Shown here in pieces: positions 20,303-51,230 of a stretch of DNA of 64,000 nt. Position 1 is the first letter of the stretch. Each line of letters starts with the position of its first letter. The stretch lies in NCBI GenBank assembly GCA_030704615.1, contig CM060732.1:186001-250000 (forward strand), in the 5' to 3' direction. The notes under the pieces are model-generated. The model was not told where the DNA came from. It was given only the letters and a program-made list of their open reading frames with translations, and did not search any database. This stretch comes from Takakia lepidozioides. Lineage: Eukaryota; Plantae; Bryophyta. Made by a program: the position numbers and the translations under genes.

Positions 20303-21389
20303 AATACACCACATAAACGCAGAGGCCCCAGAAAGTTCAAAGACATTATTTTTCTAAGCTCTTAAACATTTGATGTACACAAATGAAACAACTAAATAGG
20401 CTGCAAGAGAAAATAGAGTGATTGAAAAGGAGCTTGGAAAAAAATCAAGGAGTATCCAAGCTGTGTCTTGTCAATTCACTGCATGACCTTATATCCTATT
20501 TTGCCTCAAATAGTCCTACAGAGTTTATTATTATTATTATTATTTTTCAGAGTTTATTTTCCAGCTCAAAATAATCACCTTCTTTAAGATTAACCTAGGC
20601 CTGCATGCACTCAAGCTGGAAGAATGCATGTGGGAGAAGTAGGCAGTCTAGCAAACCAGGATAACCACCTTAGATGTGCTGGTACTTTTGAGTAGGTGTA
20701 CATGAGAATTCAATATTGTTCCGCTAAAACAAAAATAATAATATATTGCTTAACAAATTTAGTTGTTCCTTAATTTAAACATTAAAAAAACATATAGTAA
20801 AGCTGCATGGCCCAAGATTCAAGACACAGTGGCTACCACATACAACCAAGTGTTAGACCAGACTGTTTTGTAATATTCAGACTGACATACAAATCTCAGA
20901 TACTTCCTTTGGACATATACTGGCCCCAAGGATGGCATCCAATTCTGCACAGCTCGAGTGAAAATGATAGAGAGGTGGTATTGGAAAGTGGCAGAACAAA
21001 ATATCAATAAATTTTATCAAGACACAGGTTTTTATCAAAACAACTTGGGCATGTGTATAACTTCAAATAATATGGAAAAAAAATGTTAATCCAGAGAGCC
21101 GGATAAAATATGTTTTAATTAAAGACAAAATACATGATGAACGCTGGAACAAATATGCATTAACTAGAAAACAACAAAGCTTTTCATGAAACCGTGACAT
21201 TAAGTCAAAGTCCAAATAATTTGAAATCTAAACCATCTGAAAATAAAGATGAAAAGATATCATATAAACAACATTCATAATCCAAATTTACTAACTTGTT
21301 GTATCAAAATGAGTGACAGTCTTACACCGGACAAATTAATATAAATTTTCATCTTTTCATATAGACTTGAATACAGCCCCGTCTATCGG

Positions 21390-22619: not shown

Positions 22620-23405
22620 TTGCAAGTCATGTCCAGGAGCGAGAAGCCCCCCACAAGAAGTTCCTCATCAGGGCTTTAACCTCCTTGATGAAGGAAGAGT
22701 CAGGGGCCAGACAGCCGAAAAAACCAGATGGAGGCTAGAAGGATCTGGTTGATAACGAGAGCTCTTCCGGCTATGGATAGCATAGAAGAGCTCCAGACAG
22801 CCGCGAGCTTCCTTTTCAGATTTGTGAGCACTTTTTGAAAACACAGCTCATTTGAAGTGTTAAGCCCTATGGAGTGTCCCAGCAATGAGTGGGTTTCACC
22901 CTCTGCAAGCCATTTGAGACCGAGGTCTTCTCCCCCAAGGTAATCAGTGAGAGGATAGAGCGCCCCCTTGCAGTTTTGACAGGATTCCCACAGATTTTCT
23001 CCAATTGATTTTCAATCCAGAGGTCAAACAGTACGTTTATAGCGCCAGTGAGGAGTTGTCAATGTTCTGTTTGCTGGAATTATCTAAGAGAAGGACTGTA
23101 TCATCCGCATACATGGAGAGCTTGACCATGTCAGGCAAACCTAGGAAGGGAAGGGGGAGGTGTAAGCCAACAATGTCATCTCTTTGTTTCATGAGGTGAG
23201 CCAGGCTGTCAGCAACAATGAGAAAGAGTAAGGGGGCTGGAGTACAACCCTGGCGAATAGACCGAGAAAGAGGGAAGGACTGGGAAATGGTGCCATCTAT
23301 GATAACCCTACTAGAGGCGGAGCTAAGCAAAATTTTAGTCCAAGCCAGAAAGGAGCCATTAAATCCAGTTTTGGCCATAGCCTGTAGGAGGAAATCCCAG
23401 TCTAT
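22620..23405 (-). mobile_element. L1-clade LINE RT remnant
   Basis: IRQGCTPAPLLF, MYADDT and LSIAGR..INQIL motifs; related to 1600-2680. Confidence 0.9.
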
Positions 23406-23595: not shown

Positions 23596-25569
23596 CTACG
23601 CAAAAAGAGATCCAATTGATAGACTGCTGGCTAGAGCAGCCACTAAGAGGCGAAACGAGGGAGATACAACCCAGCCAGCAGAACCTGGAACTCCCCCTGG
23701 AGATGTGCTTGGAGAGGTCAGAGGAGTAGGAGAGGTGCTGCCACCAGACGCTATGGCAGGACTAGTTGAAGGAGAACCAGAAATCGCTGGACTCCTGGGA
23801 GCTGCAGTAGACAACGAACCTGATAAGCTTAAAGTGTCCAATATGCACATCGCATGAGTTAAGATTCTTGAAAAGATTATAACTTTATCCTTGGGCTTGG
23901 AGCTATGGGCAGACTCTTTGAACAATGAGGAGTAGGAATTCGAGATTTCAGTGACGTGAAATATTATAACTTAAGCAAAAACATCACTTTCGTGGACGCA
24001 TCACAAGGTGTTTACCAGTGTCGACGTAGTGGACCACTGGAGCACAGGATCTCTCTTTAACAGACTAGTTCTAACCTCTCGTCCCTAGGTATCTGCTAAA
24101 TAGGAATTTCTCGTGTTTGACTGTGAACTGTGGGGCCTATATGGGGGCAGGCCAGGTCCTCTTTGAATAAAGAACACAACTTCACGATAACTGCTGATGA
24201 CACTGGGTTGAACATATGATTACAGTTCATTTCACACTGAATGGTTTTTGGTAACACAAGATAAAAAGATACGACCCGTGGAACAAATCAATAACTTTCC
24301 ACTGACTGCATTGCATGGGCCTCTGAAGACTGCGGGTTGAGGACAGATTGTACCCTTGGGTTTCGCGGAGGGAGCCTTCGTAGGAGGAGAGGGCGCAGGA
24401 ATGGCCGTTCCGTTCAAAAGCGCTGCGACAACAAACAAATGGCAGATCATCAGTTGGAGAAAAGCTGTGTACAGTCTCCCACAGCTTCACCTTACTAGGT
24501 AGTCGTAATTCCAAAAATTACAATGGGATAATATCCAGTACTTAATGAACCAGACAGTCGGATTCAGAGAGCAGACATTCAGACGAAAAGAGAAGAATCT
24601 TGACAGGTGCAAGTACGTATAAAGAAATTCAGGGAATAAAAGGCCTGCACGATGCGCGACTATGGTGAGTGCTCAGCTTGCAAGAAAGAGATTCCAAATA
24701 CCAAGAACAGCGCACGTTGTGCAATTCCGAATAGAGGCCCTACAGTCCAAGATTTGAATAGACTTAACTTCAAGTGCAAAACTACCGACCATGATAGATT
24801 TAATCGTTGTACACTCCGAATTGTTACTTAAGACAGCCCAGAGAAAAATGGCAGCTTGTCGCTGACGATGCAGTTCACATGCATTAAGTTACTAAGATCT
24901 TTTATGCAGCTATCTGTATATCAGTTCTAGAATGTTACAGATCTTCACTTTCAAGAACCGTTGAAATGAAGGTGCATCTTGTGATGAACCTGTAGCGATC
25001 AACTGATAAGCAACAACAGTCAACGTGTCCACAATGAAAGAATAAAAATAAATATATATAGTAGCAATTCTTGGTAACAACTGCATTCACATGTATGCAC
25101 ATGATACAACAGGTGTAGCGAGGAAAAGAAAACAAGAACGCAGCCTGAACGCAGGCCTCCATGCAAAGAAAAGGGCGAAAACACAATGAGTACAGTCCGC
25201 GTGAGTGCATTGGAGAATAGGGCCTGAAGACTTACCAGTGCACTGGCTGGGATCAGCCTGGACCTTGCAGAGCCCAGGGAGCATCAAAGCCAACGTAGAA
25301 TTGATCCCAGAGCCTCCGGTACCTGCGCCACCGGGAGCGATCAGTTCACACAAGCAAATGGGGCTGGTCGTTCTAACGTCCTTGATGGCGGCACAACACG
25401 CTTCAGATGGGGACGTTCCCTCCCCACCCTCCACAAACGAGAGACAAGGTACCATCTCTGTAAACTGGTTACTACAGTCGGTCGGGGTACCGGTCGCCCC
25501 AGCAAAGCTCTTTACACTCCACATCATCATCGCCAGTACTGCAAACGTCCACGCAGCGGTTGCACCCAT
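23596..25569 (-). CDS. GPI-anchored non-specific lipid transfer protein (LTPG/xylogen-like); exons 25569-25236, 24422-24354, 23819-23596; about 208 aa
   Basis: Signal peptide, 8-Cys motif C-C-CC-CLC-C-C, Ser/Pro-rich linker, hydrophobic C-terminal tail; two phase-1 GT-AG introns join in frame (627 nt). Confidence 0.93.
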
Positions 25570-26149
25570 TCCTCTGCTCTCAATTGATGTGTGGTCCGAG
25601 ACAAAGATGAGCAACTTGTTGCTCAGATGACTGCTCCAACCACGATCTTGAACTGCACAGCACAGGGAGAAGGACGAGGGTGCCACGACTGAAAGGAGAC
25701 ACCTTCTTGGTTCTTGGGTCTCTGGAGAGAACCCACAAAAGACACACAGAGAAGATGCAGCAGCGCAGATGTGCGTGACTTGAAGAGAGTACTGTGGAGA
25801 AGCGTTCCCCGTCCCTTCCTTCCTCAATAAACGCTGGCAGTTTCGGGAAGTTGGAACACTTCACCGTCAGAATCCCTACCTTCGACCTCCTCAGATGGAG
25901 CATTCCGGATGTAATTGCCCACTCCAGGTGGATTTGTGAAGCAAACAGCTCGATAGAAGTAATACCCGTATCATGTAATATAATACCGTTCCGGATAACT
26001 TGCGCTGTAGATTAATTACTACGTGATTAGTGCATAATTTTGGACCGGAAGATAATAGGAATAATGTAAGAACTTAATGTGTCAGATGGTATGGCGGTTT
26101 CGGCATGTCAAATCTTCCACACCCTCTCTTGAGAGTGACATGGAACTGG

Positions 26150-26412: not shown

Positions 26413-28799
26413 TACAAGAGCCTCCCATCAAGAGCCTCCCATCTCTGGTGGCAGACTAGCTTGTTGTGGTGAAAAATCAATTAGATGGTCTTTCGGGGTG
26501 GCACAAAGGTTTGTCATAGGCTGAGCGCAACACCCACCTGCTCGCTCTGTACCAAAATTTCAATAGTTAAATCCCTGTGATTGAACCTTTTCTTACATCT
26601 GTGATCCTGGATTGCACTGCCGGCAACGTTTGTAGCTAACTCTGATGAGATTTTAATTGCCCGAAAGAACTCCAATTTGTTTTGAGAAAACCTTTTTTTA
26701 GCAGTTGCACATGTGATTTTCAACACCCATCAGACCTAAACCGTAGAGCTTACCTTCAGTTCTTAACCAGGCCCAAATATTAACAAATATATGTCCACAA
26801 ATTCTTTATTTCCCCCACACCGAACGTTTGGGACTGTTGAGAATCGCTTAGGTTTGATTTTGTTGGAAGTATTATGTTGACTTAATCGGTGTAGTGACTC
26901 TATGCTCTGTTGCAACTGGCTAGGTATCTCTGAAGGTTGGAGAGTAGTGATACTACTTGGCTGATGCAGCGAGCAAGTTTATGTAAGGATCAGTTTGCGA
27001 GAGACACTATGAGCAAGATATTTGGGGCAAATCCTGGAAGAACTGTCAGAGGGCTGGTTGAATCCAGTCCTGGTTAATTCCACCACACTTGCTCTAACCA
27101 GTTAAAAGTGTTCGTTTCTGAAGGTCCAGAGGTTAAGTTATAGCCCAGTTCATCAAAATTGATGTCTGCAAGAGTAGTTTGCTGGATTACTAAGGGAGTT
27201 TTCATCTGGAAGGATTTTTGTGAAAATGATATTTGGCAAAGGGCAGCACTACTTGAGGGGGCAGAGAGAATTTTGTGTCGGAAGGAGTAGTAAAGAGGAA
27301 ATATAGAGTTTTTGCATGGTGAAGAATTGAGAACAGATCGACATGGGTCTTAACATGTTCATAAACAGTTCAGCAAGCAAGGTTTATCCTGTTTCAAAGG
27401 ACTGCAGCTCTTGGCTGGATCAGCAGTTCGAGATACTTGCAACCGAAGCGGCATTCCAAGGGCCTCCACTGTATCTGTCAGATGTGGAGCTGGCAATGGT
27501 GCCTATATAGGTGATGTCAATGGTGTGACTAGCAATACTGGGGTGGAATCAAGCTTTGGAGAGTTTCTGAGATGGTAAGAAGCGACAATTTTGAGACACT
27601 GACGGCACACGTCACGCCAACGACAGAGCAGTTCTTTGCTAGTGAGGCGGAGGATTGCCCATCAGAAGGGTTCTCATCAGTTGCGGAGGCTGTGGATGCA
27701 ATTCGGCAAGGCAAGGTGTGATTGTCACTTTGTGTTTCTCACTAATGTAGGGGATATTCCCTAGCTCTGCAATATGACAGAAAGTCGTGAACTATTAAAT
27801 TTTAAATAGAGAAGCTTTGGAAAATAACAGAGTTGACAAGTCTGGCCACAGTTTGTGGTAGTTGTAGATGACGAAGACAGAGAAAATGAAGGCGATCTGA
27901 TAATGGCGGGATCACTGGTGACGCCAAAGTATATATCTTTTCTGGTTAAGCATAGCACAGGTATTGTCTGTGTGGGCATGAAGGGTGAGATTCTGGATCG
28001 TCTGAACATCCCTCTAATGGTTCCGGACAAGGACAACGAGGAGGCGCTTCTCACTGCCTTTACTGTTACTGTGATAAGTATCTGTTCACTTTTTCAGTAT
28101 CCAGTATGCATATTTATAAGAATCTCAGTTGAAAATTCACAAAACCCAACCCAAGCTATTTTTCGGCCTATTGACGGTTCAGGTGATTCTGGCATCCCTC
28201 CCTCTCTTGCATTGGAATGGGTACTATTCTGAAGGAGGGACCCTCTTGGAAAGCATGAATCGTTATGCCCACTTCTTGCTAAGTTTCAGAACTGCAAGAT
28301 TTTTTTGCCCTCCCTGGGTCTGAGCTCTGGGGGATTACTTGCATCAAATTCATTCTATGGTGAGAAAATCTGGTTAAAACCAACTCCATAGTTAGTCTTA
28401 CTACTGGAGCATGTTTTCTTCAATAGCACTGCTGATGTTCTATTCTCCTCCTGCCCTGGCGAATCAGACCTGGGGTGTCTGCCACAAGACTAAAGCAGAC
28501 AAAGGCTTCTTATCAAACTCTTACTCTATCAACTTCCAACAGATACAAACGCCCCCCCCGGCCTCCTTGGTCTTTCTTTCTATTTTGTTCAATGGGCGAC
28601 AACTAACATTTAGTCCAGTGGTAAGGGCACAAGCCGCCTCACTGGTGTGTTGTATGTCATATGGGTGTCCACCTTCCCACCAGAAGGCAATAGTCCTTCG
28701 GGGTCAAGTGACACCATAAGTTACGGTTGCTTCGGCAACACGTTCACATTTACTTTCATTTTTATTTTGTTCAATCGCCCCTTGGGTTGGGGAATGCTA

Positions 28800-30760
28800 G
28801 AACGTGAGCGTGGCCCCGTGAGCGTGTGAGCGTACGCTCACGCTACGTTGGCTCACAGCCCAGCCCAGCCCAGCCGTGGACGGAATCGTGGAAGATGTTG
28901 GGCCTAATACCGTGGGTGCACACCTATATCCGCGGAGATATGTAACATCCAAAAGGAAAATGCATTATGTAAAGACTTTGTTTCCCTATTTCCGAGGATA
29001 TATATATTTTTTTGTGTGTGTTCATTCCAATAGTACCCTAGCCCTATAACCACGACGTTTCTTCCCTAGGCTGGCCCCGGGACTCGGGAGAGCTACAGGT
29101 CCCTTGCAAAGACATGAGTCTTGCAAATGCCTCCGCGTACATTGGCAGCTCAAAAGATGGGGGTAGGCTTGAAAGGAAGTTGTTGCTTTGATCAGCTGGG
29201 AAAAACGGGCTGGAACCCAGTGGTCTCTTGCACAGGAGCAGCCAAGCAGAAAACTTTACTGACCAGCAAAAATGAATGGAATTGGAGGATGAGTGGAATT
29301 TAACTATCATGGAAATTGTTAACATTAACTTGCTGACTTACTCACAATCAAGCATAATTCCTAGACGTGAAACATGTGCAAAACTCGAAATCTGATTGCA
29401 TGATAGACTATAAACCCTAAAACCTACAACCTAAAACCTAAACCCTAACACTAAGTTAGATCCCCAACCCCAAACCTTGATACCAACCTAAAACCCAAGA
29501 GCCCTGTGACCCCCAGACTTCCAGCAGGGGGCATGAAAATGACAACACTGCCTAGATGCGTACCGGAAGCATGAACACAAGAATGACCCCTATAAGTGGT
29601 GTGCGTTACCACACACCACTTTCAGTGGCATGTGCATTTGAGAAATGGACACACTGCAGAAATGTCCTTATACAATATACACACAAGGAAATCCTCCAAA
29701 AGTGGTGTGCGGTGTGTTAGAGGGCTGTCTGGGACTTAGACAGTTTTATGGGTTCTGTGGGGTACCCTTAATTTTGTGCAGACTTATGGATGGTAGGCTC
29801 AGACCAACAGAGGCCTTAGGGATGACAGACACAGGCCTTAAGGGTGGTAGGCAGGCTCACACAGTCAGTCACATGCTTACATAGCCTGACACAGCTTGTC
29901 ACAGTCTTACACAGTTAGACATAGCTTGACACAGCCTGTCACAGCCTACCACAGTCAGACACAGCCTGACACAGTCTGATACAGCTTGTCACAGTCTGAC
30001 ACAGTCTTATACAGCTTGACACAGCTTTACACAGCCTTACACAGCCTATCACAGCCTATCACAGTCAATTACAGTCTATCACAGTCTATCATAGCTCGAC
30101 ATAGCCCGACACAGCCAGTCACAGTCCGACACAGCTTGGCACAGCCCGTCACAGCGTTCACAGGGAACGGTTATCATTGGCAGGGAACAATTGTGTGGGA
30201 ACGACATCTGCAGAGGGAACGTGCATTCTGTCTTGGATGACAGTTAGTTAGTTAGGCGGTTAGAACAGCTTGCAGGTAGAATAGGCAGAGTAGCAACATG
30301 GAGGGGGGCACTTCTGGGGGCATTTTTGGGGTTATCAAGGAAGGAGATCAGGCGGAGAGCACGATCTTGAGCGCAAGGATGGAGAGCACGGTGAAGGAGG
30401 AGAGACAATCTATTGAGAGGAGGAGAGACAATCAGTGGCAAGTGCATGTGCGTCCATTTCCCTTGATGTGTCGTGCCACAAAGACCGAGTCCTCAGCTCC
30501 TTGCAAAGCATTTCAGACTTCAGGGGTGGGATAGATGATAAAGGTGAAGTCTGAAATGACTGTAAAGGGCAATTCATTCCGCGGAAATATGAACATCCCG
30601 CGGAAATACGTCCTCTATGTTCAAAATTAACACGCACACCACTTACAGGGGTCGTTCTTGTATTCAAATACTTCACGCTGACGTGGCGGGGGTACGGGCT
30701 CATGCTGACGTGGCGTGAGCGTACGCTCACACGCTACGCTCACACCGTAGCGTCGCTGCC
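28800..30760. mobile_element. Non-autonomous TIR DNA transposon in a RibA intron
   Basis: Inverted ends AGCGTGTGAGCGTACGCTCACGCYACGT at about 28820-28850 and 30703-30740; internal AAACCCTAA-like and CACAGCC repeats. Confidence 0.7.
29860..30160 (+). repeat. Degenerate 10-bp CACAGCCTGW minisatellite
   Basis: Tandem acagcctgac/acagcttgtc units. Confidence 0.9.
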
Positions 30761-31727
30761 TTGGGTTCCCTCGTGCGTGCATTATACCAGTCTTTTCTTT
30801 TGTTTCCTATCTCCCTGTAGTAGTTGGAGACTACCTGTCCACATATCTTTAGGAGGTAGTCTAAAAGTGTATTTTTGGGAATTCACTAAATGTGTCTCAC
30901 TATGCCACAAATATAAGCGGAAAAGGGAGAAGCTAGTAGAGCGGACAGTGGTGGCACGTCTGCCTACAAAATGGGGCACCTTCAAGGCCTACAGCTACAC
31001 TTCACACCTTGATGGCATGGAACACATTGCCATGGTTAAGGTATTATCCTTCTCTTGCTCACTCTTGTTCTATGCCTTATATTAGTGTGATATCTGATTC
31101 ACGTAGCACCCTACTTCCTTGTGTGGCTATCAGTGGCCTTCCCTTCCCTCGACTTAACTAGCACAGACCTGCCTAGCAAGGCTCCAATCATATCTTGACA
31201 ACAATTTATTTAGCCAAATGTAATCCCACTTATACACTTTGTGAGGTGGTCACAGAGCCGTGGCTGTCCTTGATTATTGTATTGTACGCAGTATAAAGAT
31301 TAGCTCAAGAACCCAAGCCCATTTTCTGAATAAGAATATGAAGCACTCCATCACTAACTCCAACTAATGCACCACCTTAAACTGAAGAGAATACAAGATC
31401 CCTGGCCAAAGTAATAGTTTGCAAACTTGTATTCAAGGAAAACAGTTTCATATTAACCAAAATATGGACTTTTGTACTAACAAATGCATATGTGTCATGT
31501 TTGGAACCACCACATTGCATGTCTGTTTGTAATGCCAAGCAGTTCTATAATTTGAAAACTTGTATGACAGGTACACAAGTTCCATTTTAACCAAAATAGG
31601 AACTTTTGTACTAACAAATGCTATGTGTCATGTTTGGAATAAAGTAGTAACAAGATAATTACATGTCACATGCATGAAAATGAACGGCACAAGTTAGAGG
31701 TTCTTTTTTTGTGCATTTCATGTGTCA

Positions 31728-32627
31728 CTAAGAAGTTGAACTAGGGTCCTTCTTTAGCATAGCCCTAACCTCTAACTGGCTAAGGGAAGGTTGGTGGATC
31801 TCATAAGCCCCGGCGCATCCTAGATGCACGTTGTACATGAAGTACATGTGCTTACAAGGTAGATATGTTTGTTTTTTCTTCTTGACAAATAGCTCATCAA
31901 AGTCGGGACAATCACAAGATGGAAACTGACCAATGTATACATTGTAAACCAATCCTGCTCTGGTAGATCCCTCTGTTTGTAGCTGGTAAATTTTCCCATA
32001 ACCTGGCTGAGGCACGTTTCTGAATCCACGAACCTCAGCAATAAGAGTCTCCGCTGACTCTTGGCGACTCAAGTGTCGAGGAGTCGGATCCCGACGCCGA
32101 ATGCGCACCCCATAGCGTGTAGTGGGATACTTACCCACAGGAAGGACAACACCTTGATGCATATGTTGTTCCACTGGAAGTGGTCCCACAGGAAAGTTCG
32201 GATCAGGAACGTTGGGAGGATGGACTGCTCTAAAACCAATAAATTGATTAAGACACCCATAACAAAATATTTAGTTACTTTATCACTTACTTTATATTGT
32301 ATTATGAAGGCGCCGCCACAAAGTAACATGTCAATCGTACAACCATCTTCTGAGGATCCACGTGTAACCCATGTAGTCCAAAAAACACTAACGCCAGAGT
32401 GTATAAAAAATGTTCACATTTCAAATTTGGCCAATTTGGCCTTTTTAAGGCCTTCGCCTTCGCGAAGGCCCCCCTTTCCCCCCGCTCTCCTTGGCGGGGG
32501 CAGGTTTGAACCCGCAACCTAGTAGAAAATACACCACAACCTTACCAACAAGCCATGCTCTATTCAATAAAACAACCTCTACTTTTTTGTTAATAAACTG
32601 TTTCTTTTCAGTTAAACTTGTTGCCAT
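31728..32627 (-). CDS. SWIM zinc-finger protein (MEKK1/ZSWIM2-like SWIM), probably multi-exon; 5' end uncertain
   Basis: EGST..YNVYIGQFPSCDCPDF...LPCKHMYFMY gives CxC-x-CxH in ORF 31728-32189. Confidence 0.75.
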
Positions 32628-32846: not shown

Positions 32847-35800
32847 ATGGGGAGGAAGAAGGACACTCGAGGGGGAGGCGTTGCTGGTGGTGGTGGTGGT
32901 AGAGGCAAGCTGCGGACGGAGAAGGTAAGCTGTAGTTTTGTTTTTTTTCATGACCTGCACTTAGGCATATGCGCCATCGCATAAGCCCCACCAAGCTGCT
33001 CCTTATCTAGCACATCCGCCGGCGCAGATGCCTAAGTCACTTCAAGTCTCACAAGTTTGCGAATCTCCACACATACACACAACCGTCTCCGCCGGCGGAG
33101 ACAGCTCATTCCCCTTGGTTTTTTCTGATGCTTGGAAGGGCTGGGCTGCCACCTCCGCCGGCGCATACCGTTGGAGCTGGGATGCTCGCATGTTTCAGGA
33201 AGTGCTCCTCTACTCCCATCCCGTTTATTTTTTTGCATGCTCATACGTTGCTGATGCTCCGAGCGGGTTGGGCTGGCGTATCCGCTGGCGCATACCTGTG
33301 CAGCAGGGCTGCTCAAATGTTTCAGGAAATTCTCCCCTTTTCCATCTTCTTTGTTTTTCCGCATGCTGATGCTCCGAGTGGGCTGCGCTGGCATATCCGC
33401 CGGCGCATACCCATTGAGTACATTTTTTTTTCTGCTCAGATCATAGGTTTCAGGAACCTCCTGCAAGCGTCTCCACCGGCGGAGACACTTGGAGCTTGGT
33501 TATTTTTGCATATTCCCTGTGTTACGGAAGCTCCAAAGCGCCAAGGCTGCCACCTCTGTCAACACAGACCCGTGCAGCAGGGCTGCTCACATATTTCAGG
33601 AAGTTCTCCCCCCCTTCCATCTCTTTTGTTTCTCCGCATTCTCATAAGTTGTTGATGCTCCGAGCGGGCTGGGCTGCCATATCCGCCGGCGCATACCCAT
33701 TGAGCACAATCTTTTTTTGCTTAGCTCCTAGGTTTCAGGAACCTCATGCAAGCATCTCCGCCGGCGGAGATGCTTGGAGCTTGGTTTTTTGTTGTATATT
33801 CCTTGTGTTACGTAAGCTCCAAAGTGTCGAGGCTGCCACCTCCGTCGGCGCAGACGCCTGGGGAACCTTCCCTATTTTGGTTGATCACAGTATTCAAGTA
33901 TTTCAAAGCTTCTACGTTGCCACCTCCACAACTCCACATGCTTCCATAGGCCTAGTTTGATCTTTCAAGGTGCTCCTGTATGTTTGGCTACAACCTCCCT
34001 TCCATGGTATGCGCCGGCGCATATGCTTGGAGCTCCTTGAGCAAAAATTTCTTCAAGGGCCTCAAATTTTGAGTTGGTTGCACATATGTGTCATATGCGC
34101 CGGCGTAGGTGGTCGGAGGTCCTCTGTCAGGATGCTCACGCCTGTATTCTGCTGCAAGTTGTAAGCTTTGAAAGACAAGGATATTCATGGAATTAGTTGA
34201 CTATCCAAATTCATTTGTTTTCTTCATGCAACCATGACACTGAACTGCTCTTTTTACATATTATACATTCACACATGTGCTCTTCTCATACACTGACATC
34301 TTGAACTGTTTTGGTCTATGGAATTAGGAAATTACTACTACAACTAAAGCTGTGGAGGCCGGGACGCTTGCAACCATTATTGACGACATTGATGCAGGGA
34401 ATTGGGGGGCAGATGAGTATGAAGAGGATACAACATCTAGTGATCCTCTTTCTCTAGATGCCAAACAGGCAATTATTCTGGAAAAGAAACAAGATCTGAA
34501 TGTAACTTTCAGGTCCCTCCTCATTGAGGATGGAGTTATGGACATTCCATTGTGTCGCATGATTTCTATGCAGGTTGTTAGGCCCGCCCTTGCCAACGAC
34601 ATCCTAAAGCTTAGAGGAGACTTCTATTCTGGATACCATCCAGGAGCAGCCGTGTTCTATGTTTCTGTTGAGGGGATTGATGGATCTACTGTAGATGTAG
34701 GTCCTGATATCATCTCTACATGGGATAGTCATTGATGAGTTTGAGAAGTATCTTGAGTCCAAGCCAAAGTTGCATCATCTTCGGGGGAAGATGTTTCATG
34801 TCTGGGATGGGAATCATAGGCTTCAAGCATGGTATCCCTATATCAATGAAGTTCATGGGGCCAACTTGTCAAGACATGTCTGTGTGACAAGTTGGGTGCT
34901 CAATGCGGACATTGAAAATCGTGGTTCCCTCAGGTCCATCATGGATGGAGTGAATGTGTGAGTTTCCTTTCTATTCTTCATTTCTTTCATGTTCAATGTT
35001 GTCATGTTCTTGCTCAATGGATGTACATATACACATCTTCTTTCTAATGATCATATTTTATATGTGCAGGGCAACAGAGAGGGCACATGTTACATCCAAA
35101 TTTGTGCACTTGGTTTGCAAGGTCAATATGATTGGCCTTACACCTGTCTCTGAATGGAAGAATGTATTGAGGAAAGAGCAATACGACGAATGTATCAAGA
35201 AAGCAGGAAAGACTTGGTATAACCTGACAGTCCATGCAATGACAGAGATTTTGTACAAGGTAACATCATGTCTTAACCAAGTTTCATTCTTTGCATCCAT
35301 AGACAAGATTCACCTCTGGTTCATGTTATGAACTGTTTTGGTTCTTTTGGCAGCATGATATTGTTGAGGCCCAACGCATGGCGGGGGAAGCTTACAAACT
35401 TGCTGATGGGCCAAAGAGTCAAGAGGGCCTTGAAGATACAATGAGACAGGCTGGATTGAAAGCAAGGGAGCAACACAAGAGTCAGCTTGTGAAGTTGCTT
35501 CCTATTGCTGATCCAACCCTTGGAGAGGGGTTTCTCCAAGAACTTAAACTGCATTGGTCACGTGTAAAGGCAGGATAAGAGGAAATGACCCAAGAGAAAA
35601 TGGTGAACATTGCTACCGCCCGGGTGGATCCTGAAGAAAAGGTGGAATGGCTACATATATGGAATGGAGACCAAACACTTCACGACCGTAATTTTTTTCC
35701 ACCCGGGCCTATCAGTGGGCCAACACTTGATCCTTGGCTGAATAGAAGGACTTTTTGGTGGCAGGTACATATACAATCACTATCTTCTCAATGCAATTAA

Positions 35801-38464
35801 TTCATTTTGTTGATGACACATCAACATAGTTATTTAACTGACTGTATTTTCTGGCAGCTTCGCAAGGTTGCCTTGGCTCAGTTTGCCTTGTACACCACTC
35901 AGCTTGGCCAATTTCATGTTGCCTTGGAGGAAGGAGAGAGTGAGAGTCTGGGAGACTACATGGATACATGGAAGATGACTCATTTCAATGAGTTGTTTCA
36001 TAGAGAGTTCTCATTGCCAAAGGGGCCATTCAGAGGCAATGATTGGGAACAACAAACAGGTGGGGAGAAGGTGGTGAGACGGATTTTATTCAGGTACCAT
36101 CTTTCCATTGCATTGTACATGGATAGTGTATACACCTTGTAAGTCAAAAATGTCTATGCTTCAAGTATTTTTCTAGTACATTGGGATATACATGTTTCTT
36201 AATGTGCTTGTTCAATTGTTGAACAGGTTGCATAAATATTTGTCTCCACAATAACTTTGAATGTGTTTGTATTTTAGGTACATGAGATTTGTGCTTGTAC
36301 CGAGTGATCGACTTAAGGCTGAGCCCAAGTTTCTGATGGCCTGGAAGTTTGGTGCTCAACAAGCTTCCATGTACACACCTGCAATTGAGGAAGATTGGGG
36401 TGTGGAACACCAGGAAGGGGGGGGTTGGTATTTGGATATGCCCAAGGGTATTATCCCCTATGCAGAAATGGGACTTCATAAGGAATGTGTTTGCAGGCAG
36501 TCAGTGAGTGATGAAGGGGGTATCTCCACTGAAGTCCATGTTCTTGATCTGGAGCATGCAGAACAGATTGCTACACAGGCCGCTGACGCTGTAGCCCAAG
36601 TGGTCCATGCCGTTGTGGGTGTACCAAAACGCAAATCACGAAAAAGAAAAGGTGCGGATGTCAATGCAGGTGTGGCCCCCAATGCAGGTGTGGCTTCTAT
36701 TGCTGGTCCTATTGGTAGTTCTTCACATCCTTCAAATCAGTTGGTTGTAGTGCCTACACCTACTACTCGAGGAAACAAGCCAAAGGCAGGCGAACATCCT
36801 TACAGTGCAGTGTCATTTTCTGGTGGTGCACCTAGCATGTATCGCATGAAGATCATGCCTACTCATTTCATTGATATGGTGGAGGCCTCAAGTACATCTC
36901 CTGATGCGACCTTGAAAGAGCTCATGGAGTTCTTAAAAAATGTGAGTTTCCCCCAACAAACAAACTTGAATGTAAGGAATTCTTCGATGTTTTTATATCC
37001 TCATCATCCGGCTATTGACTCCTACATTTTCTGTATGTTGTTTGCAGTTGCCAGGAACTTGGTCTAGTGTTGTGGATGGAAAAAGCGTGCATGTGGCTGT
37101 GGACATGATCATCGTGGACTGCCCAACAGGAATGCCTGTACAGGGCTGTTTGGATGGTGTACAGGTTCCTCCCTGGAATGCTTTTGATAAACGGTATTGG
37201 GAGTATGCATTCTCCATTGCTAATGACCTGTTGGATGACAATGGATGCTTGGTGTTCTTGCAGGGCTCCGATGATTCATTTGCATTGGAGCTCTTTTCTT
37301 ACTCCAGGGGCAGCTCTATTTCGTATTATCAAGGAAATATACTTGCATCAATACCACCCCTCTACACACTCAGACAGGAAAGGTAAAAATCATCCCTCTT
37401 CAATATCTCATTGTTTGATGTTTCATCTTCCTACTCTCATACATATTATTAAACCATCCGGGTGCACTGTTTTTGTGGAAATGGCACGTCTAACAGACCA
37501 TGTTCTTCCACGCCCATGTCCTCACCAAGCAAGGAGGACTATTCAAACTGTGTGAGTCTGGCAAAGTTGTGGACCCCCTTGCAGACCCTGTTGAGTTGGA
37601 TGCCATCTACAACCACATTCCAGATGTTGCACTACCCATGCAAACTCCTCAACAAGCCTGGAGGGGTGCGCGAGACCGTAGTCCCGCCTTCATGCAAGTG
37701 TTGTTGGAGACATGCTCACCTCCTGGCTCCCGCATTTTGGATCTCACAGCTGGCACAGGTTTGCATTGGTCTCCATTTTGTAATTAAAATCTTCTGAGTT
37801 GATTCATGATCATTAACTGTTATCCGATATAATATCATCATTGCATGTTTTTTTCCTGCAGGTTCTACATTTATTGCTGCCCGCGAGTCTGGACGTCACG
37901 TATTTGGTCTTGAGGGGGACCAGACGTTGTATGCAGCACGTCTCTCTGCACTTCAAAATACTCAACCCGTTTTGGTTTCATCTGTGGTAACTCCAACCAT
38001 TCAACGTCCTATGAGTTTGTTGGAACCCCCCGCTCCTAAGGTGGCGCGCAAGCTTGGTCTTCATCTCGGCAGTACTTCCTAGTGAGTATGTCTCGCCTCC
38101 ATTCCCTTTGTTGCAATCTCTATATTATTTGCAAAGCAAACCATTCCCATTTGATTTGTTAACATAAGTATACATGTATGTGTGATGCAGTGATGGGATT
38201 GTGCGGACCATCTACGATAGTCTACCCCAAAGTCCTCTTTCATCGTTTTATCTACCTTCGTATGCCGAGTCCCAAGCTTTGCATTCAATACATCAACAAC
38301 GTGATGTAGGTCTTTCCAATGATCTCTTGTTTGACCGAAGAGCAGCTATTGTTGGACAATCCGTGGATAGGTTGCGTAGAGTTGAGGCTTTCATGGATGT
38401 GTATGCCTCTGAATCACAGGCTTATGACACGGATGATGAAGTATCAGCTGATGATGTTATGTAG
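32847..38464 (+). CDS. ParB/Srx-like plus beta-class N4C/N6A DNA methyltransferase-like fusion gene, copy 2 (about 10 exons; lesion near 34733)
   Basis: Approximate GT-AG exons 32847-32924, 34328-34957, 35070-35259, 35354-35764, 35859-36093, 36278-36941, 37049-37382, 37497-37758, 37862-38081, 38191-38464; motifs IPLCRM..VRPAL, WDGNHRLQAW, DMIIVDCPTG, RSPAFMQVLLETCSPPGSRILDLTAGTG|STFIAARESGRHVFGLEGD. Confidence 0.8.
33010..34110. repeat. Array of TCCGCCGGCGSA / ATGCGCCGGCGCAT palindromes in predicted intron 1 of copy 2
   Basis: About 11 copies, e.g. TCTCCGCCGGCGGAGA at 33086 and 33755. Confidence 0.85.
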
Positions 38465-39412: not shown

Positions 39413-40735
39413 CCTCCCCCACATCATGCAATACAAAGCGCGTGTAAGGCACATACCCCGCCTCCTTTCATCTGCCGACAATCTTCTCAGCTCAGCATGG
39501 ATTTCCTTAATTCTGGGATGCAACTTGTCATCTACAGCGAAGATATGCACCCTGTTGCCAACCTCAATGCAGCAGCGACCTAGCTCCTTTCTAACCCCTC
39601 TGACCTCCATTATTCTTTTCACCTTTGCAGATCATCCCACCTGCCAGCTGCAGCATAGCAACACGTAAGTTGCGGCATCCTGTTCATCCCATTTGAGGAT
39701 AGATGTTGCCGCACGTTCAGCCATCTCCAGATTGCCATGGATTCTACAGGCACCAAGCAAGGCCTTCCACACCACAACATCTGGATTGATTGGAATCTTA
39801 TTAATCAGATCCACTGCCTCATCCAGTTGTCCAAGAAGGTCCACCGTACAGCCAAAGTGCTTTACTGTCGGAGTGACACCATGATCTTGATTTCCTCATT
39901 CAATAGGCCAGTGTGGCTGCATGCAGAGAGAACATACACAGGCATTGCAAAGGGAAACAAACGTGATGTGATCGGGGTTCGCCCCTTCCCCCATCATTTG
40001 CTCATAGGTCTCCAAAGCCTCCACCCCGCGCCCTTGCTGTGCATACCCTGCAATCATCGCACTCCACGACACCGAATCTCGTTCAGCCATACTGTCAAAC
40101 ACTCCCTCCGCATCCTCGACGCATCCTCGACGCATCCACATTTTGCATACATGTCCACGAGGGTATTGTTCAGAATCACATCTGGTACAATTCTTGCTTT
40201 TGTGATGCAACCATGCACCTCTTTGTCCTTTTCCAGGGCTGCCAGGCTTCCAAACGCACAGACGTGATATGGTCGGGCTTCACCCCTTCCACCATCATTT
40301 GCTCATAGGTCTCCAAAGCCTCCATCCCACGCCCCTGCTGTGCATACCCTGCAAGCATCACGTTCCACGACACCACATTTCATTCAGCCATATTGTTGAA
40401 CACTGCCTTCGCATACTCGATGCTCCCACATTTGGCATACATGTCCACGAGGGCATTGTTTAGAATGACATCGGGTACAATTCCAGCTCTGACAATGTCG
40501 CCATGGGCCTCTTTGCCCTTTTCCAGAGCTGCCAGGCTTGCACATGCATTGCAAACGCACACAAACGTGATGTAGTTGGGCTTCACCCCTTCCCCCATCA
40601 TTTGCTCATAGGTCTCCAAAACCTCCACCCCACGTCTCTGCTGTGCATACCCTGCAAGCATCGCGCGCTCCACGACACCACATCTCATTCAGCCATATTG
40701 TTCAAAACTGCCTTTGCATCCTTAATACACCCATA
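39413..40735 (-). pseudogene. PLS-E+ PPR gene fragment broken just before the DYW domain
   Basis: PLS repeats, WKALLGACRIH, YVLL, V..RVHIFAVDDKLHPR..EIHAELRRL, FVLHDVGE then an abrupt end. Confidence 0.95.
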
Positions 40736-43608
40736 CCAGCAGGGACACGTCTTTCCTTTCTCCTCTCCTCCGCTTTCGTGTGCAGATCTTTCTCCGATTC
40801 GTCAACAAGTGTCGAGGTACCACGGGCATCCAACGAGATGCGCGGCATGCCATTGTTTCTGCATCTCTGGTAGGTAAACACAGCTTGGGCCTGCCACGGT
40901 CCAAGCCATGAAGAACAGTGGCTCTTGAGCCAGGGCCCCTATCTTAAGAAGCACGTATTTCATATACATGCAAGACAGTCAGCATGCGTGAGCACAAGTT
41001 ATGACCATGTATTCGCAGAGTGCAACCAAAAAGATAAAGTGCAAATGCGGTGCCACATTTCCCAGGCAAACCTCATAAACCAGCTTTTGCATACAACGGG
41101 AGCTGGGCTTCACCTGTACACAATTTGCATTGCAGCTTTTCCCGCCCCCTCCTGGTGCGTAAACTCCACGCTCCTTCTTGCTGTTTGCAGCTCCCTGGCG
41201 AAGAGGTTGTCCTTGTACGCACATCTGAAACGTGTCACGTAGTCTTCCATTGTCTGTGCTCCATCCCATTTGACATACAAGCGAACGAATTTGTATGCAT
41301 TACGACTTGCTCCTTCGCATTCGTCATTACCTGCGTTTCGAACATGCATTATCACGTAGCAGTTCACGAAATTCATTCCAGCAAAGCAAATTGGGGGAAG
41401 TACCTTGAATTACCTGGAACCACCAAGTCATGCGGTTGAGCCACACATCCACTGCAGGGTTGGAAACTTCGAGTGGAAAGACCACATGGTCCTTATACTC
41501 TCTGATACATTCCAGATCGACAGCCACCGTGCCTGCCATTTCCGATCCAATTTCAGGAGCAGGAAGAAGAGTGGCTATTGCTAGGAAGGAACTTCAATGC
41601 ATTGAAACCTCACCTTCTCTTTCGCCTCCATACATGCCGTTGAGAGGTGATGCAGTTTCTCCAACTGTATGGTCGGCTGCATGGCCCGAGAATAGTGTTT
41701 TGCAATCTCGGGGATGACGTCCTTTCCAAGTGTCGGATCTGCAATGGCCACCAGCTTCACAAGCTTTGACTTGTATTTGGTTCTGGACTTGACCCCGGCT
41801 TCCTTCAAGTGCTCGGTCAATGACTGCAATGTTTTTGTCTGCCCCTCACTTTCCATGAAGAAGCGTTTGGCATGGGCCAAATCCAGCTTGATGTTTGACT
41901 GCCAAGAAAAACATGCAGAAGCATTACATACGGTCCATGTGGAAAGATGACTAGAAATTGGGGAAGGATGAGCAGAGGAAAATGGGAGGACAACTTACTT
42001 CGTATATCACCTCCACCATTCCATCCATAGTGAGGCGATACCATGTCCGGTCTGTTTTTGCCAGGGCTTTTTGAATGAGCTCGGGCTCCAACATTTCGGC
42101 GAACATGTGCGGGTCAGTGAGACCAGTTTTCCTCACCCTGTACAACATATGTGCCATGTGGGTATGCACGTAAGCATTTTCAGTGACCCTGCAAGGCACA
42201 CTCTCCAGTTCAGTCCAATGAAGCATAGAAACAAAACTGATTGGAAACCGAAATGCGGCACCGCATTTCGGATGTGCTTGGGAGGGTATGAGAATCTTAC
42301 GAGTTGAGGTCCGCCATGGCATTCTTGAGCAGCCGCCTTCACCTTGAGGATGACACACTCCACCATGTAATGCCAGCCAATATGCTTGGAATGAGTCTGC
42401 TTGATGTACTCCCACCAGGCAAGAAGTCGGTGATTCCCGTCCCACGCAAAAAACATTTTGCCAGACATATGGCCGAAGTCTGGATCACCCTTCAGCATTG
42501 TCTCGAATTTGTCGTTGCGAGTGTGCCAGTGGGTATCCCATGCTGACAATTCATCCGCAGTGGGTCCACGAGTTTCGCCGTCCTCATTCTCAATGGAAAC
42601 GTAGAAGGCTGGCGAACCTAGACGGTACCCTTCTCGAAATGCGAACTTGAGCTTATCCACATCTCCTGGAAGAGCCTGCCTGATGATGGGAAGGGAGACC
42701 ATGCGACAGAGTGGAATTCGAAGAGTCCGCTGGAATACCCTGCTGCCCAGAACTCTACCAATGCTACTCTGTGTCTCCTCCAACATTGTATCCGCTGCAC
42801 TTTGGAATTCCTCCAGAGACATTTCTGCAGGTGGCGGTAGGGGCCGAGTAGCTGGAGCATCCCCAAATGCAGCTGAAGTCTGGGGAGTCTTTGCGGGCAA
42901 TTCTTGAATTGCAAAGGCCTCCTCCGGGCCTACAGTATTCTGAAGTTCTTCCTCAACGGTGGTCAAGTGCTGCTGCGAACGTTGAGCAGCAGCACCCTCC
43001 TCCGCTGACAGATCCACAAAATTGGTCAATCCCGTTGCCTTCGCTGCAGAAGAGATGCCCCCAACATCACCTGGCTGGAAATCAAGCAAGAACTGGGCTT
43101 CAGCTCGTGGAATCGGTTTTGCAGGAGACTGCTCCAACCTCCCCCTGTTTGCCTTCCGCTTCTTTATTCTTACAAGTGAAGGTGTCTGCTGCATTTGAAT
43201 CTGCACTGCACCCTTCTGCTTCATTCTCTTTGGGGGGGGGAGAACGGCCTGGTCCGGTTCAGAAACCAGTTCAAGGACGGGCTGCTTCTTCTTCGTCTTT
43301 GCTGGAGTAGGGCCCGACCCCTGCTGGCAATTCTCCATGACCTTCAAACGCGAGTCTTTCTCTGGGGCTTTGAACTGCAAAGACTTGCCTTTCCAAACCG
43401 CGTCCTTGAAACGCACAGGGCTAGGCCCGGCATGAAGACCCGTGCTCGTGGATCGGCTGGGTGTGCATGCTGCAGCTACCTCCACGGATTCTTCCTGCGG
43501 CTCTTCGGATTCGTGCGATCCCTCCACCACCACCACCTTTCGGCAGGCAACGCAGGCAATCCAGCCACCAATGAGAGCTCCGTGCGATGCGCGCAGCTGA
43601 TCGAGCAC
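40736..43608 (-). CDS. ParB-like/MTase family gene, copy 3 (5' two-thirds, truncated before the MTase domain)
   Basis: RIPLCRMVSLPIIRQAL..FYVS..GKMFFAWDGNHRLLAW; KTDRTWYRLT; YKSKLVKLVAIADPTLG; WLNRMTWWFQ, all collinear with copy 2. Confidence 0.8.
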
Positions 43609-43877
43609 CGAAACCCTCCCTCATTTTCGTTGTGCAATTCTTAGACTGTATGATAGGACACTTGAATGCAGAAGATGTTTGCATGCCTAACTGTCAAAGG
43701 TACGCTTGCCGTCCGCAAAACAAACATCATTAACCAACGGTCAGGCCGCGCCGCCTCCTGCCACTTCAGCCAGCATGAGTGCAAACATCAAAATGTGGTG
43801 ACGCAATTCCATTGGTCCACGTGTTCACATATCATGGCATTCCCGTCCCAGCGTCTGATGAGTTAGAGTGAAAACAT

Positions 43878-44342
43878 AAATGCGGCGCCGCATTTTCGTT
43901 AAGGCAACTTTGAGTTGCATCCCGAACGGAAATGCGGTTTCATGCCTAGCATACAAAAGTGCCGCATTTCAGTTGCAGTGTTTCATGATTTTCAATCACA
44001 ACGGAAATGCGGGACCGCATTTCCGTTCCACTGTCACATACCTTACTTGTTGGACGGAAATGCGGTGCCGCATTTCCGTCCCACTGCTGCATGCCTGAGA
44101 TACAAAACGGAAATGCGGCGCCGCATTTCCGTTCTGGAAAGTCCGAAGGTACGACTCGGACAGAAATGCGGTGCCGCATTTCAGTTGCAGTGGTTCATGA
44201 TTTTCAATCACAACGGAAATGCGGCGCCGCATTTCCGTTCTGGAAAGTCCGAAGGTACGACTCGAACGGAAATGCGGTGCCGGATTTCAGTTGCAGTGGT
44301 TCATGATTTTCAATCACAACGGAAATGCGGTACCGCATTACC
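43878..44342. repeat. Array of 22-bp palindrome GGAAATGCGGYRCCGCATTTCC with exact 53-bp period
   Basis: Starts at 44003, 44056, 44109, 44162, 44215, 44268 and 44321. Confidence 0.95.
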
Positions 44343-44589: not shown

Positions 44590-44690
44590 GTAGGCTTTTA
44601 CGTCTTCAGAGTCAAGAAGTCGTAAATGGCTTCCATAACTGCATTTGCAGTCATAACATAGAGACGTAAAAGCCGCAATCTGTAATAGTG
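44590..44690 (-). mobile_element. CACTA-type transposon terminus
   Basis: Reverse complement begins CACTATTACAGATTGCGGCTTTTACGTC; similarity to the 20-kb duplicate resumes exactly at 44691. Confidence 0.6.
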
Positions 44691-48951: not shown

Positions 48952-49915
48952 GGAAATGCGGCACCGCATTTCATTTTTCTCCATGCAGCGATTTCTGGCA
49001 GCTCCCTTTCCTCCGTTCTGGTCGTAACGGAAATGTTGTACCGCATTTCATTTCTTGACATGACATTACCATACTTCGAATTGGAAATGCGGCACCGCAT
49101 TTCCATATTGGACCTTGAATTGTCCAAGCATGTCCAATTGCCAATGCATGTCCATGTCCGTTCTGGAAATGCGGCACCGCATTTCCATGTCCGTCATCAA
49201 ATTTTCTTATTGGACAATGGAATACGGTGCCGCATTTCCGTCAAAGGGTCTGGAATTGGACAATCAACGATGTCTGTTCTGGAAATGCGGCACAGCATTT
49301 CCATGTCCGTCATCAAAATTTCGTATTGGACAATGGAATGCGGTGCCGCAATTCCATCCAAGGGTCTGGAGTTGGACAAACAGCGATGTCCGTTCTGGAA
49401 ATGCGGCGCCGCAATTTCTTATTGGACAATGGAATGCGGTGCCGCATTTCTGTCCAAGGGTTTGGAATTGGACAAACAACGATGTCCGTTCTGGAAATGC
49501 GGCGCCGCATTTCCATGTAAGTCATCGAAATTTCTTATTGGACAATGGAATGCGGTGCCGCATTCCCGTCTAGCATCATGGAATGCGGAGCCGCATTTCC
49601 GTGGATGGGTCTGGAGTTGGAAAAACGTCCATCTCCAAAATGGAAATGCGGCACCGCATTTCCATGTCCGCCATGTAAATAACGTGTTCGACCTCCGCAT
49701 GCGGGGTGGCATTTCCATTTCCCTAAAACTGTCGTGTCGAAAACGGAAATGCGGCACCGCATTTCCGTTCGGCCGAACAGTTTCTGATGTCCAAACCAGG
49801 AAGTGGAAAATTGTTCTTGCCCCGGTTTTGGAAATGCGGTGCCGCATTTCCAAACGAGGTTTTTGCAGTTCCCACATTTCCATTCCGACATGGAAATGAA
49901 GTGCCGCATTTCCGA
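48952..49915. repeat. Second array of the GGAAATGCGGYRCCGCATTTCC palindrome
   Basis: About 17 copies, many spaced about 54 or 62 bp. Confidence 0.95.
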
Positions 49916-51083: not shown

Positions 51084-51230
51084 CTATCCCAAGCAGTGTG
51101 GACACAACCAATCTCCGTCAGGAACCTTCTCAAGAGGTGGTGTCAAGCATCCCATATGCCAACCCCTTGAGCACCGATCACACACCAGCATGGTGGCTGC
51201 CCCTTTGGCAGACCCACAGAGCATGCACCT
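51084..51230 (-). CDS. PHD finger at the C-terminus of Gypsy Pol
   Basis: CMLC..MLVCDRCSRGWHMGCLTPPL..VPDGDWLCPHC matches C4HC3. Confidence 0.93.
   Translation of the reverse strand, partial: RCMLCGSAKGAATMLVCDRCSRGWHMGCLTPPLEKVPDGDWLCPHCLG

Follow-up and report, generated by a model that had tools for sequence, protein, structure and literature searches.

A family of fusion genes in the Takakia genome

We analyzed 64,000 nucleotides from Takakia lepidozioides (Bryophyta; GenBank assembly GCA_030704615.1, contig CM060732.1, positions 186,001 to 250,000 of the forward strand). We call this whole stretch the window, and coordinates below count from its first letter. The window contains three defective copies of a multi-copy land-plant gene family that is probably carried by DNA transposons. 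The family joins an N-terminal domain that resembles the ParB/sulfiredoxin (Srx) superfamily to a C-terminal domain that resembles amino-methyltransferases (MTases) of DNA. Copy 1 lies at 11682-13629 on the minus strand, copy 2 at about 34.3-38.46 kb on the plus strand, and copy 3 at 40736-43608 on the minus strand. Only copy 2 has both halves. All three copies are truncated or dead and are non-functional.

The N-domain exon of copy 2 (34350-34957) encodes the ParB/Srx-like domain, with WDGNHRLQAW at about 34800; its 5' limit is uncertain and its donor is GTGAGT at 34958. Exon 3 (35070-35259, ATERAHV...WYNLT...ILYK; acceptor cag/G, donor AAG/gtaaca, where the slash marks the junction) is collinear with a protein of the liverwort Riccia sorocarpa, P0153. 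It is followed by exon 4 (35354-35764, IADPTLG...DPWLNRRTFWWQ), exon 5 (35858-36093, ...GEKVVRRILFR), and exon 6 (36278-36971), which encodes YMRFVLV...GGGWYLD and a low-complexity linker and is the sole exon that all three copies have in common. The MTase-like domain starts in exon 7 (37048-37382) with a variant motif IV, VDMIIVDCPTG (37102-37131); copy 2 also has RSPAFMQVLLETCSPPGSRILDLTAGTG. Exon 8 (37497-37758, RSPAFMQVLLE...ILDLTAGTG) encodes motif X and the first part of motif I, and exon 9 (37862-38081, GSTFIAARESGRHVFGLEGD) encodes the rest of motif I and motifs II and III. The last exon (38191-38464) encodes a conserved tail, YLPSYAE, and ends with a stop codon at 38462-38464.

The initial annotation had this gene span 32847-38464. 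The 3' end holds up, given the clean splicing and a YLPSYAE tail that is conserved with Riccia. The start is doubtful: the proposed first exon (32847-32924, plus strand, MGRKKDTRGG...) has a GT donor at 32925 that is phase-incompatible with the sole AG (34348-49) before the N-domain exon. That these are intronized genes is borne out by seven GT-AG junctions in copy 2 that are canonical and consistent in phase. Nevertheless, copy 2 is a pseudogene because of a frameshift, a stop codon, and a splicing defect. The frameshift, at 34727-34734 in the N-domain exon, moves the reading from frame 2 (WDSH, then stop) to frame 3 (DEFEKYL); copy 3 reads WDTHWHTRNDKFETML at this position in a single open reading frame (ORF). 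The stop codon is an in-frame TAA at 35576-35578 in exon 4, where copy 3 and two related contigs from the European Nucleotide Archive (ENA), L002 and L003, are open. Also, exons 7 and 8 clash in phase: the only GT donor leaves phase 2 and exon 8 needs phase 0. As a side observation, a 1111-nt contig from sequencing run X8 (guessed to be an RNA run, type unconfirmed) matches the DGNHR-coding stretch at 34784-34820 over 37 nt with about 92% identity. It is probably from a paralogue rather than from copy 2 itself, and that paralogue may be transcribed.

Copies 1 and 3 each preserve one half of the gene. Copy 3 has only the N half: a 491-amino-acid ORF with the ParB/Srx-like domain (WDGNHRLLAW at about 42400, minus strand) and the next exons. 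It ends about 100 nt past the exon that encodes WYLD, against an array of pentatricopeptide repeats (PPRs). Copy 1 has only the C half: it begins at the WYLD exon and continues through a variant motif IV (ADIVILDIPDG), motifs X and I (KSPAFMQILLESCS...VVDLSVSTG), and the last exon. We considered whether copies 1 and 3 might be two pieces of one gene, but both hold the WYLD exon and they are just 34% identical there, which excludes this. So of the three-copy ParB/MTase fusion family that had been proposed, copy 2 has both parts of the predicted fusion, and copies 1 and 3 are halves that overlap by one exon.

The three copies are clearly related. All of the protein motifs that had been quoted for them are present where they were said to be. 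Comparisons with tblastn give collinear matches with E values of 1e-5 to 1e-25, and at the nucleotide level blastn gives no match among the three, in line with the low DNA identity that had been noticed. They also have intron positions in common, as claimed. A phase-2 intron after ...MDGVNV, at GVN(V)/ATERAHV, is found in copies 2 and 3, L002, and L003, and motif I is interrupted by a phase-1 intron (LDLTAGTG/GST; 37759-37861 in copy 2) whose position copies 1 and 2 share with L003.

Relatives in liverworts and ferns

An exhaustive HMMER search with the N domain of copy 3 gave 451 relatives at E<=1e-3. Most of these are fragments that were called on short plant contigs. The named relatives are from R. 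sorocarpa and from two Adiantum ferns. The Riccia protein KAL3677308.1 (P0153, 1207 amino acids) is collinear with the window exons over its whole length: the shared blocks are the N domain, four linker blocks, FRY/YVW...WW, motif IV, motifs X-I-II-III, and the tail. Paralogous gene models number in the dozens in Riccia. A full-length homologue in Adiantum is collinear with the window gene as well, and L002 and L003 contain complete collinear genes. Thus the suggested survey of range and copy number found homologues in Riccia, Adiantum, L002, and L003, at high copy number. Intact members have about 1,000-1,250 amino acids, of which a conserved linker of about 500-600 amino acids separates the N and C domains.

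Intron content varies between lineages, because introns that are present elsewhere are missing from the C half of L003, whose entire length to motif I is in one intronless 420-amino-acid ORF, and from L005. The latter (ENA ERZ25073694 ctg131914, 5001-5774) lacks the intron after the N-domain exon and reads continuously through ...MHDINRAIENSHVKTNLVH.... We considered P0049 as a spliced transcript and rejected this, as it lies on a 305-kb genomic contig and is a copy without that intron. In P0141 of Adiantum capillus-veneris (KAI5080717.1), the N domain is joined almost directly to motifs X-I (CPWRGGMERSPTLHEKLL...MYAGCG); a shorter isoform could explain this, as could mis-splicing in the gene model.

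Between L002 and L003, the proportion of nonsynonymous differences (pN) is 0.14-0.4 and that of synonymous differences (pS) is 0.7-1.0 in all of the domain exons. Because the synonymous sites are saturated, all that can be stated is that pN << pS, which to judge from these sequences indicates long-term purifying selection on the protein. A dN/dS comparison among the window copies themselves had also been suggested, but they are too diverged for this.

Other searches did not widen the range. In word-based searches, the motif IV exon of copy 1 found no homologous proteins, and Riccia queries found only Riccia paralogues. Against phage genomes, tblastn found no match for the N domain and just one 46-amino-acid match, at motifs X-I, for the C domain, so the donor lineage cannot be named.

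An N-terminal domain with a predicted ParB/Srx-like fold

The AlphaFold2 model of the N domain has a predicted local distance difference test score (pLDDT) of 88 and a predicted template modeling score of 0.81. When it was compared with the PDB by Foldseek, the E values were weak (about 1e-2), yet the first 50 matches all belong to the ParB/Srx superfamily. These matches include sulfiredoxin, ParB-CDP/CTPgS, Noc, PadC, KorB, SerK, SbnI, and Atu1540. Against the ParB_N clusters of the Atlas, the template modeling (TM) score is about 0.5.

The phosphate-binding turn of this superfamily is GxxR: GERR in ParB, GCHR in Srx, and DGxHR in ParB-like nucleases and DndB. In our alignment of 53 N domains, the asparagine of WDGNHRL (N126) is the same in all, and conservation is at least 90% at G125, H127, and R128. 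The model places DGNHR between a strand (120-124) and a helix (126-139), so that it matches the GxxR motif at the strand-to-helix turn. Sequence-based searches are less informative. A sequence-profile search of the PDB with the alignment gave chance matches only, and the Pfam profiles have no relevant match to single window exons or to the 491-amino-acid ORF of copy 3. From the model, then, the N domain appears to have the ParB/Srx alpha/beta fold, and the reading of DGxHR as the signature of this superfamily agrees with the structure comparison.

The linker is less easily described. In the Atlas, it matches only an unlabelled cluster from streptophytes.

A divergent methyltransferase-like domain

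For the C domain, we built a profile from the Riccia paralogues, the window exons, and the ORFs of L002 and L003. Against PDB sequences, this profile matches M1.HpyAVI (E = 6e-9) and CcrM (1.4e-7) across the whole domain, with weaker matches at motifs X-I to the rotifer N4CMT, M.RsrI, TTHA0409, and M.MboIIA. The AlphaFold2 model has a pLDDT of 81, and its Foldseek matches, with E values of 1e-11 to 1e-7, are HpyAVI, CcrM, BceJIV, RsrI, MboIIA, PvuII, and N4CMT. Both the profile and Foldseek indicate a class-I MTase fold with the permuted motif order IV-VIII, X, I-III. So the model and the profile suggest that the C domain is a divergent, circularly permuted PF01555-type fold of the beta class of N6-adenine or N4-cytosine MTases. 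This is the fold that had been proposed, and the structure searches that had been recommended recover both it and the ParB/Srx fold.

The best Atlas cluster for the C domain (TM 0.70) is a phage family in which 100% of members have PF01555 and 84% have ParB_N (PF02195). The suggestion that this is a DNA-modification module of prokaryotic origin is supported insofar as a phage-like fusion is the nearest structural cluster; any DNA methylation activity is putative.

Individual members are at the edge of detection by Pfam's N6_N4_Mtase model, whose gathering threshold is 26.7 bits. The Riccia proteins P0190 (31.7) and P0196 (27.0, profile positions 16-217 of 221) pass, while P0182 (25.9), P0153 (23.7), and P0180 (19.9) score below it. 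The window exons and the ORFs of L002 and L003 have no match to this model. Several Riccia members bear the automatic UniRef name "Trimethylguanosine synthase," which has no support from Pfam.

The motifs themselves are a mixture. In motif I (consensus D-x-F-x-G-x-G-T/S-T), the GxG is retained: Riccia has IDFAGGWGAT, copy 2 has LDLTAGTG/GST once spliced, copy 1 has VDLSVSTG/..GAT, and L003 has VDVAASTG/GNS. Motif X is conserved too. Motif IV is where the initial annotation expected it, as the hidden Markov model aligns aaDxhhhDxPxG (aDllilDlPtg) with vDaIItDPPYN, but the catalytic consensus is missing. Instead of (D/N/S)-P-P-(Y/F/W), all aligned members have a loop of the form D-[LCIM]-[PS]-[TSDE]-[GRN], that is, D-x-P-T/S/D/E for the most part, with no PP-aromatic. 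The loops are DLPT, DLPS, DMPS, DMPT, DLSS, or DMSS in Riccia, DCPT in copy 2, DIPD in copy 1, and DLPD or DLPE in L003 and L002. The D and the P of this strand-4 loop are conserved from the liverwort to the Takakia genome.

Palindrome arrays and a transposon end

We examined six regions upstream of family members, and four have a palindrome array that is private to that gene. Upstream of the N-domain exon of copy 2, at 32968-34109, are 12 copies of TMTSCGCCGGCGSAKA, as compared to 0.08 expected, and there are none elsewhere in the window. Copy 3 has another palindrome, GAAATGCGGNNCCGCATTTC, with eight copies upstream of it at a 53-bp period (43877-44341). The window has 26 sites of this type: these eight, two within copy 3, and 16 in a second array at 48953-49912, which is 4.6 kb beyond the transposon end described below and may be part of a different element from this subfamily. 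(ORFs in the second array are only translated repeats.) On the Riccia contig L001, there are nine TCCGGCGANNNTCGCCGGA sites at 8508-9371, a region that precedes the gene by 0.6-1.5 kb. On L003, fifteen AATGGTCGGNNCCGACCATT sites lie upstream of the gene and within an intron, at 4249-4892 and 7396-8726. All four arrays are far above chance, with no sites expected, and the Riccia and L003 palindromes differ in sequence from both types in the window.

Divergently upstream of copy 2 is a SWIM zinc-finger ORF (31728-32189, minus strand), which scores 20.2 bits against a Pfam cut-off of 19.6. The Adiantum nelumboides gene on contig L004 has a SWIM homologue in the same divergent position (6442-6819, minus strand; E = 4e-12). 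The SWIM ORF and the ParB-like gene look like a conserved two-gene unit in these two cases; we found no SWIM ORF in L001, L002, or L003.

A CACTA-type terminus, 5'-CACTATTACAGATTGCGGC, is at 44672-44690 on the minus strand. Its position is fixed by a paralogous sequence that is uninterrupted and so resembles an empty site: 19738-20303 aligns in reverse with 45326-44691, with an identity of 91-93%, and the similarity stops exactly at 5'-CACTATTACAG (44690, minus strand). The wider paralogous segment is 19328-20303 versus 45786-44691 (in reverse), at 90-93% identity. Judging from these alignments, copy 3 and its array appear to lie just inside the terminus of their element, with copy 3 about 1.1 kb in. 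For copy 2, we considered CACTAACG at 32658, upstream of the gene, as a terminus, but this match is no better than chance and we do not count it.

Neighboring features

The window is otherwise typical of land-plant DNA, with PLS-type PPR repeats, a bifunctional RIBA gene, a gene for a glycosylphosphatidylinositol-anchored lipid transfer protein (GPI-LTP), reverse transcriptases (RTs) of both long terminal repeat (LTR) and LINE elements, and GT-AG introns. Copy 2 sits in a repeat-rich stretch that is bounded on one side by the end of the RIBA gene at about 31.1 kb and on the other by a PPR array (39.7-40.7 kb). The RIBA-type host gene (27855-31085, plus strand) encodes 3,4-dihydroxy-2-butanone 4-phosphate (DHBP) synthase and the start of GTP cyclohydrolase II. 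The remainder of the cyclohydrolase domain was not located, and the repeat block from about 31.1 kb may interrupt the gene. In the RIBA gene region, at 29822-30161, are arrays with a 10-bp period that resemble CACAGNNTGA, and related arrays (66-72% identity) are at 59145-60422, near 59-60 kb.

On the minus strand are the RT and RNase H of an LTR retrotransposon (17211-18185), a LINE-type RT fragment (23037-23378), the GPI-LTP (LTP_2) gene (25087-25827), and a PHD-finger ORF (51084-51770). Three blocks of PLS-type PPR repeats (10574-11527, 18693-19069, and 39937-40735) are related to each other at 75-86% identity. PPR blocks adjoin the points where copies 1 and 3 are truncated, and their relative orientations there are opposite, which suggests either segmental duplication or rearrangement or the capture of PPR fragments by the elements.

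Known systems

The closest published systems are accessory genes of algal transposons. Dinatale et al. 2025 describe a 1104-amino-acid accessory protein of Sola1-1_Ec32, from Ectocarpus, with a ParB-like domain and an N4-cytosine/N6-adenine MTase domain, and they propose that this protein binds and epigenetically modifies its own transposon (PMC12477816). It is like the plant family in its accessory role on a transposon, in its two domains, and in its nearly equal length. It differs in that the host is a brown alga and the vehicle is Sola1; also, we liken the two by description and homology is assumed. In red algae, Petroll et al. 2025 report that Plavaka (EnSpm) elements carry PAG2, with PF01555 and SET domains, and PAG3, with a ParB-like domain and a 2-oxoglutarate (2OG) oxygenase; that tandem arrays of inverted repeats adjoin PAG3; and that these accessory genes led to elements being mislabelled as Mutator-like elements (MULEs) (bioRxiv 10.1101/2025.02.11.637652). 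Like the plant family, these elements pair a ParB-like domain with a nucleic-acid-modifying domain, and their EnSpm/CACTA vehicle and inverted-repeat arrays recall the CACTA end and the arrays that we see. But in Plavaka the ParB-like and MTase domains are on separate proteins with other partners, whereas they are fused in the plant family. Taken together, ParB-like and MTase accessory genes of transposons are reported from Ectocarpus and from green and red algae (PMC12477816; bioRxiv 10.1101/2025.02.11.637652).

Phages and prophages encode fusions of ParB_N and N6_N4_Mtase (PF02195 and PF01555; for Iyer et al., these are methylases of the "ParB-Tls locus") with the same domain order as the plant family. 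The phage fusions have about 400 amino acids, adjacent domains, and a canonical DPPY, whereas plant family members have about 1,000-1,250 amino acids, a 500-600-amino-acid linker, spliceosomal introns, and D-x-P-T/S/D/E. Similarity in sequence between the two is limited to motifs X-I. Iyer, Zhang & Aravind 2016 describe a family in chlorophytes that joins a ParB helix-turn-helix (HTH) to Dam, and state that land plants have few N6-adenine MTases (PMC4738411). This is another eukaryotic fusion of a ParB-type domain and an adenine MTase, with an origin in phage ParB-Tls, but its MTase is of group 2 (M.EcoKI/TaqI/Dam-like) and its ParB part is the HTH, while the plant family has a group-1, permuted PF01555-type domain and a ParB/Srx N domain. 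MpDN4MT1a/b of Marchantia and N4CMT of rotifers also have PF01555-type folds of bacterial origin, and N4CMT is among our Foldseek matches, but these are single host genes with a canonical (T)SPPY, no described ParB domain, and demonstrated activity. Finally, VANC of VANDAL elements (MULEs) is a functional analogy only. It is encoded by a transposon, recognizes motifs of its own element, and alters the epigenetic state, but its fold is unrelated, and its effect is a loss of methylation and not the writing of a mark.

Our search of the full-text literature found no description of a ParB-like/MTase fusion from land plants. The initial annotation knew of no description of the architecture in plants, and our search agrees with this for land plants, but algal accessory genes were published in 2025. 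The gene in the window is a land-plant member of this recently noticed class of transposon accessory genes of putative function.

What the protein might do

We are confident about what the locus is, namely a decayed copy of a family with this architecture. As to its function, we propose that an intact protein would dimerize on the family-specific palindrome array of its own element (intronic, or 0.3-1.5 kb ahead of the gene) and would then act on the transposon's DNA by amino-methylation. If the variant motif IV is inactive, the protein might instead coat the DNA in a nucleotide-dependent, ParB-like manner. Either way, the element would be marked or protected, for self-recognition or against silencing. 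The copies in the window cannot do any of this, given the frameshift and the stop codon in copy 2 and the missing halves of copies 1 and 3. We consider the binding and modification mechanism to be tentative, and somewhat less likely than not; the statement as a whole, from the decayed copy and its architecture to binding and modification of the element's own array, strikes us as somewhat probable.

Several observations weigh against this proposal. We infer every mechanistic step. Catalysis by the C domain is doubtful from its sequence, as motif IV is without the aromatic residue and the first proline. Pfam's ParBc and ParB_N match none of the 53 N domains at E<=1, which is why the fold assignment is structural, and the best related Pfam match is DndB, with E = 0.059, in three members. 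The domain that reads the palindromes would probably be in the linker, but the linker has no PDB profile match and gave no HTH or other DNA-binding fold. There is no palindrome array in L002 or L004. The sequencing runs that match the locus gave DNA-like contigs, none of which is confirmed to be RNA. As for spread by a DNA transposon, copy 3 supports it by its CACTA end at 44690, but for copy 2 we found no terminus, and no transposase was identified next to it. Neither element has a second, partner terminus in the window, and no MULE or other transposase domain is present in window ORFs of at least 170 amino acids.

The main alternative is that the MTase-like domain is a pseudo-enzyme and that the protein is only a ParB-like nucleotide-gated clamp, a nuclease, or a binding factor. 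The MTase fold would then be a module that binds S-adenosylmethionine (SAM) or DNA, much as METTL14 supports METTL3. Motif IV is never PP-aromatic in any aligned member, and no part of the protein is better conserved than the ParB/Srx domain, both of which fit. On the other hand, the GxG of the SAM loop and motif X are conserved, and the retention of the strand-4 D and P from liverwort to Takakia suggests a constrained active-site loop and not decay. We regard a pseudo-enzyme as possible, if on the unlikely side. It is also conceivable that the domain is an active enzyme with another substrate, so that RNA or protein is methylated via the variant strand-4 loop. Several eukaryotic acquisitions from this group of MTases moved to RNA and have unusual strand-4 motifs (Iyer et al., PMC4738411), and UniRef calls some Riccia members trimethylguanosine synthases. 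But that name is automatic and without Pfam support, the closest structures are all DNA MTases, and DNA is what the fused ParB/Srx domain and the palindrome arrays next to the gene suggest as the target. So we view an RNA or protein substrate as very improbable.

Another idea is that this is a domesticated host gene family of seed-free plants, of which the window copies are ordinary pseudogenized paralogues. This would account for the dozens of annotated gene models in Riccia, the purifying selection across a deep divergence, and the lack of a transposase beside copy 2. It does not sit well with the high copy number and many fragments (451 matches, mostly pieces), or with three very diverged and broken copies within 32 kb among retroelements. 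A CACTA terminus that is fixed by paralogous uninterrupted sequence lies 1.1 kb from copy 3, the arrays are of a subterminal type and private to each subfamily, and the algal counterparts are transposon genes. A host family is thus improbable. That Pfam is blank on single window exons might even have hinted that the family is an artefact of chance or composition, but this is already refuted by about 1,000 amino acids of collinear homology to Riccia and to two other contigs, by two confident fold assignments that agree, and by seven canonical, phase-consistent introns. We give it almost no weight.

Beyond the proposal itself, one could imagine that CACTA/EnSpm-like (or perhaps MULE-like) transposons of land plants encode an active module for recognizing themselves, common to lineages from algae to ferns, in which the protein coevolves with its private array. 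A non-5-methylcytosine (non-5mC) mark or a ParB-type coat would let the elements escape or redirect silencing by the host. The mark could be N6-methyladenine, N4-methylcytosine, or something novel that is made by the variant D-x-P-T loop. We consider this broader scenario, mark included, to be rather unlikely.

Implications

A class of transposon genes that was mentioned briefly for algae now extends to liverworts, ferns, and the Takakia genome. The pairing of the gene with palindromes recurs in independent lineages, and the non-canonical active-site loop is conserved. The copies in the window are dead and are of value only as markers of the family. In contrast, the gene models in Riccia, a close relative of the model liverwort Marchantia, look intact and would allow the idea to be tested directly. 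If it is true, then self-recognition by means of private palindromes, with modification or coating of the element, would be a new layer of the conflict between plant transposons and their hosts. Non-5mC marks in land plants, in which few adenine or N4-cytosine methylases are known, might also arise in this way.

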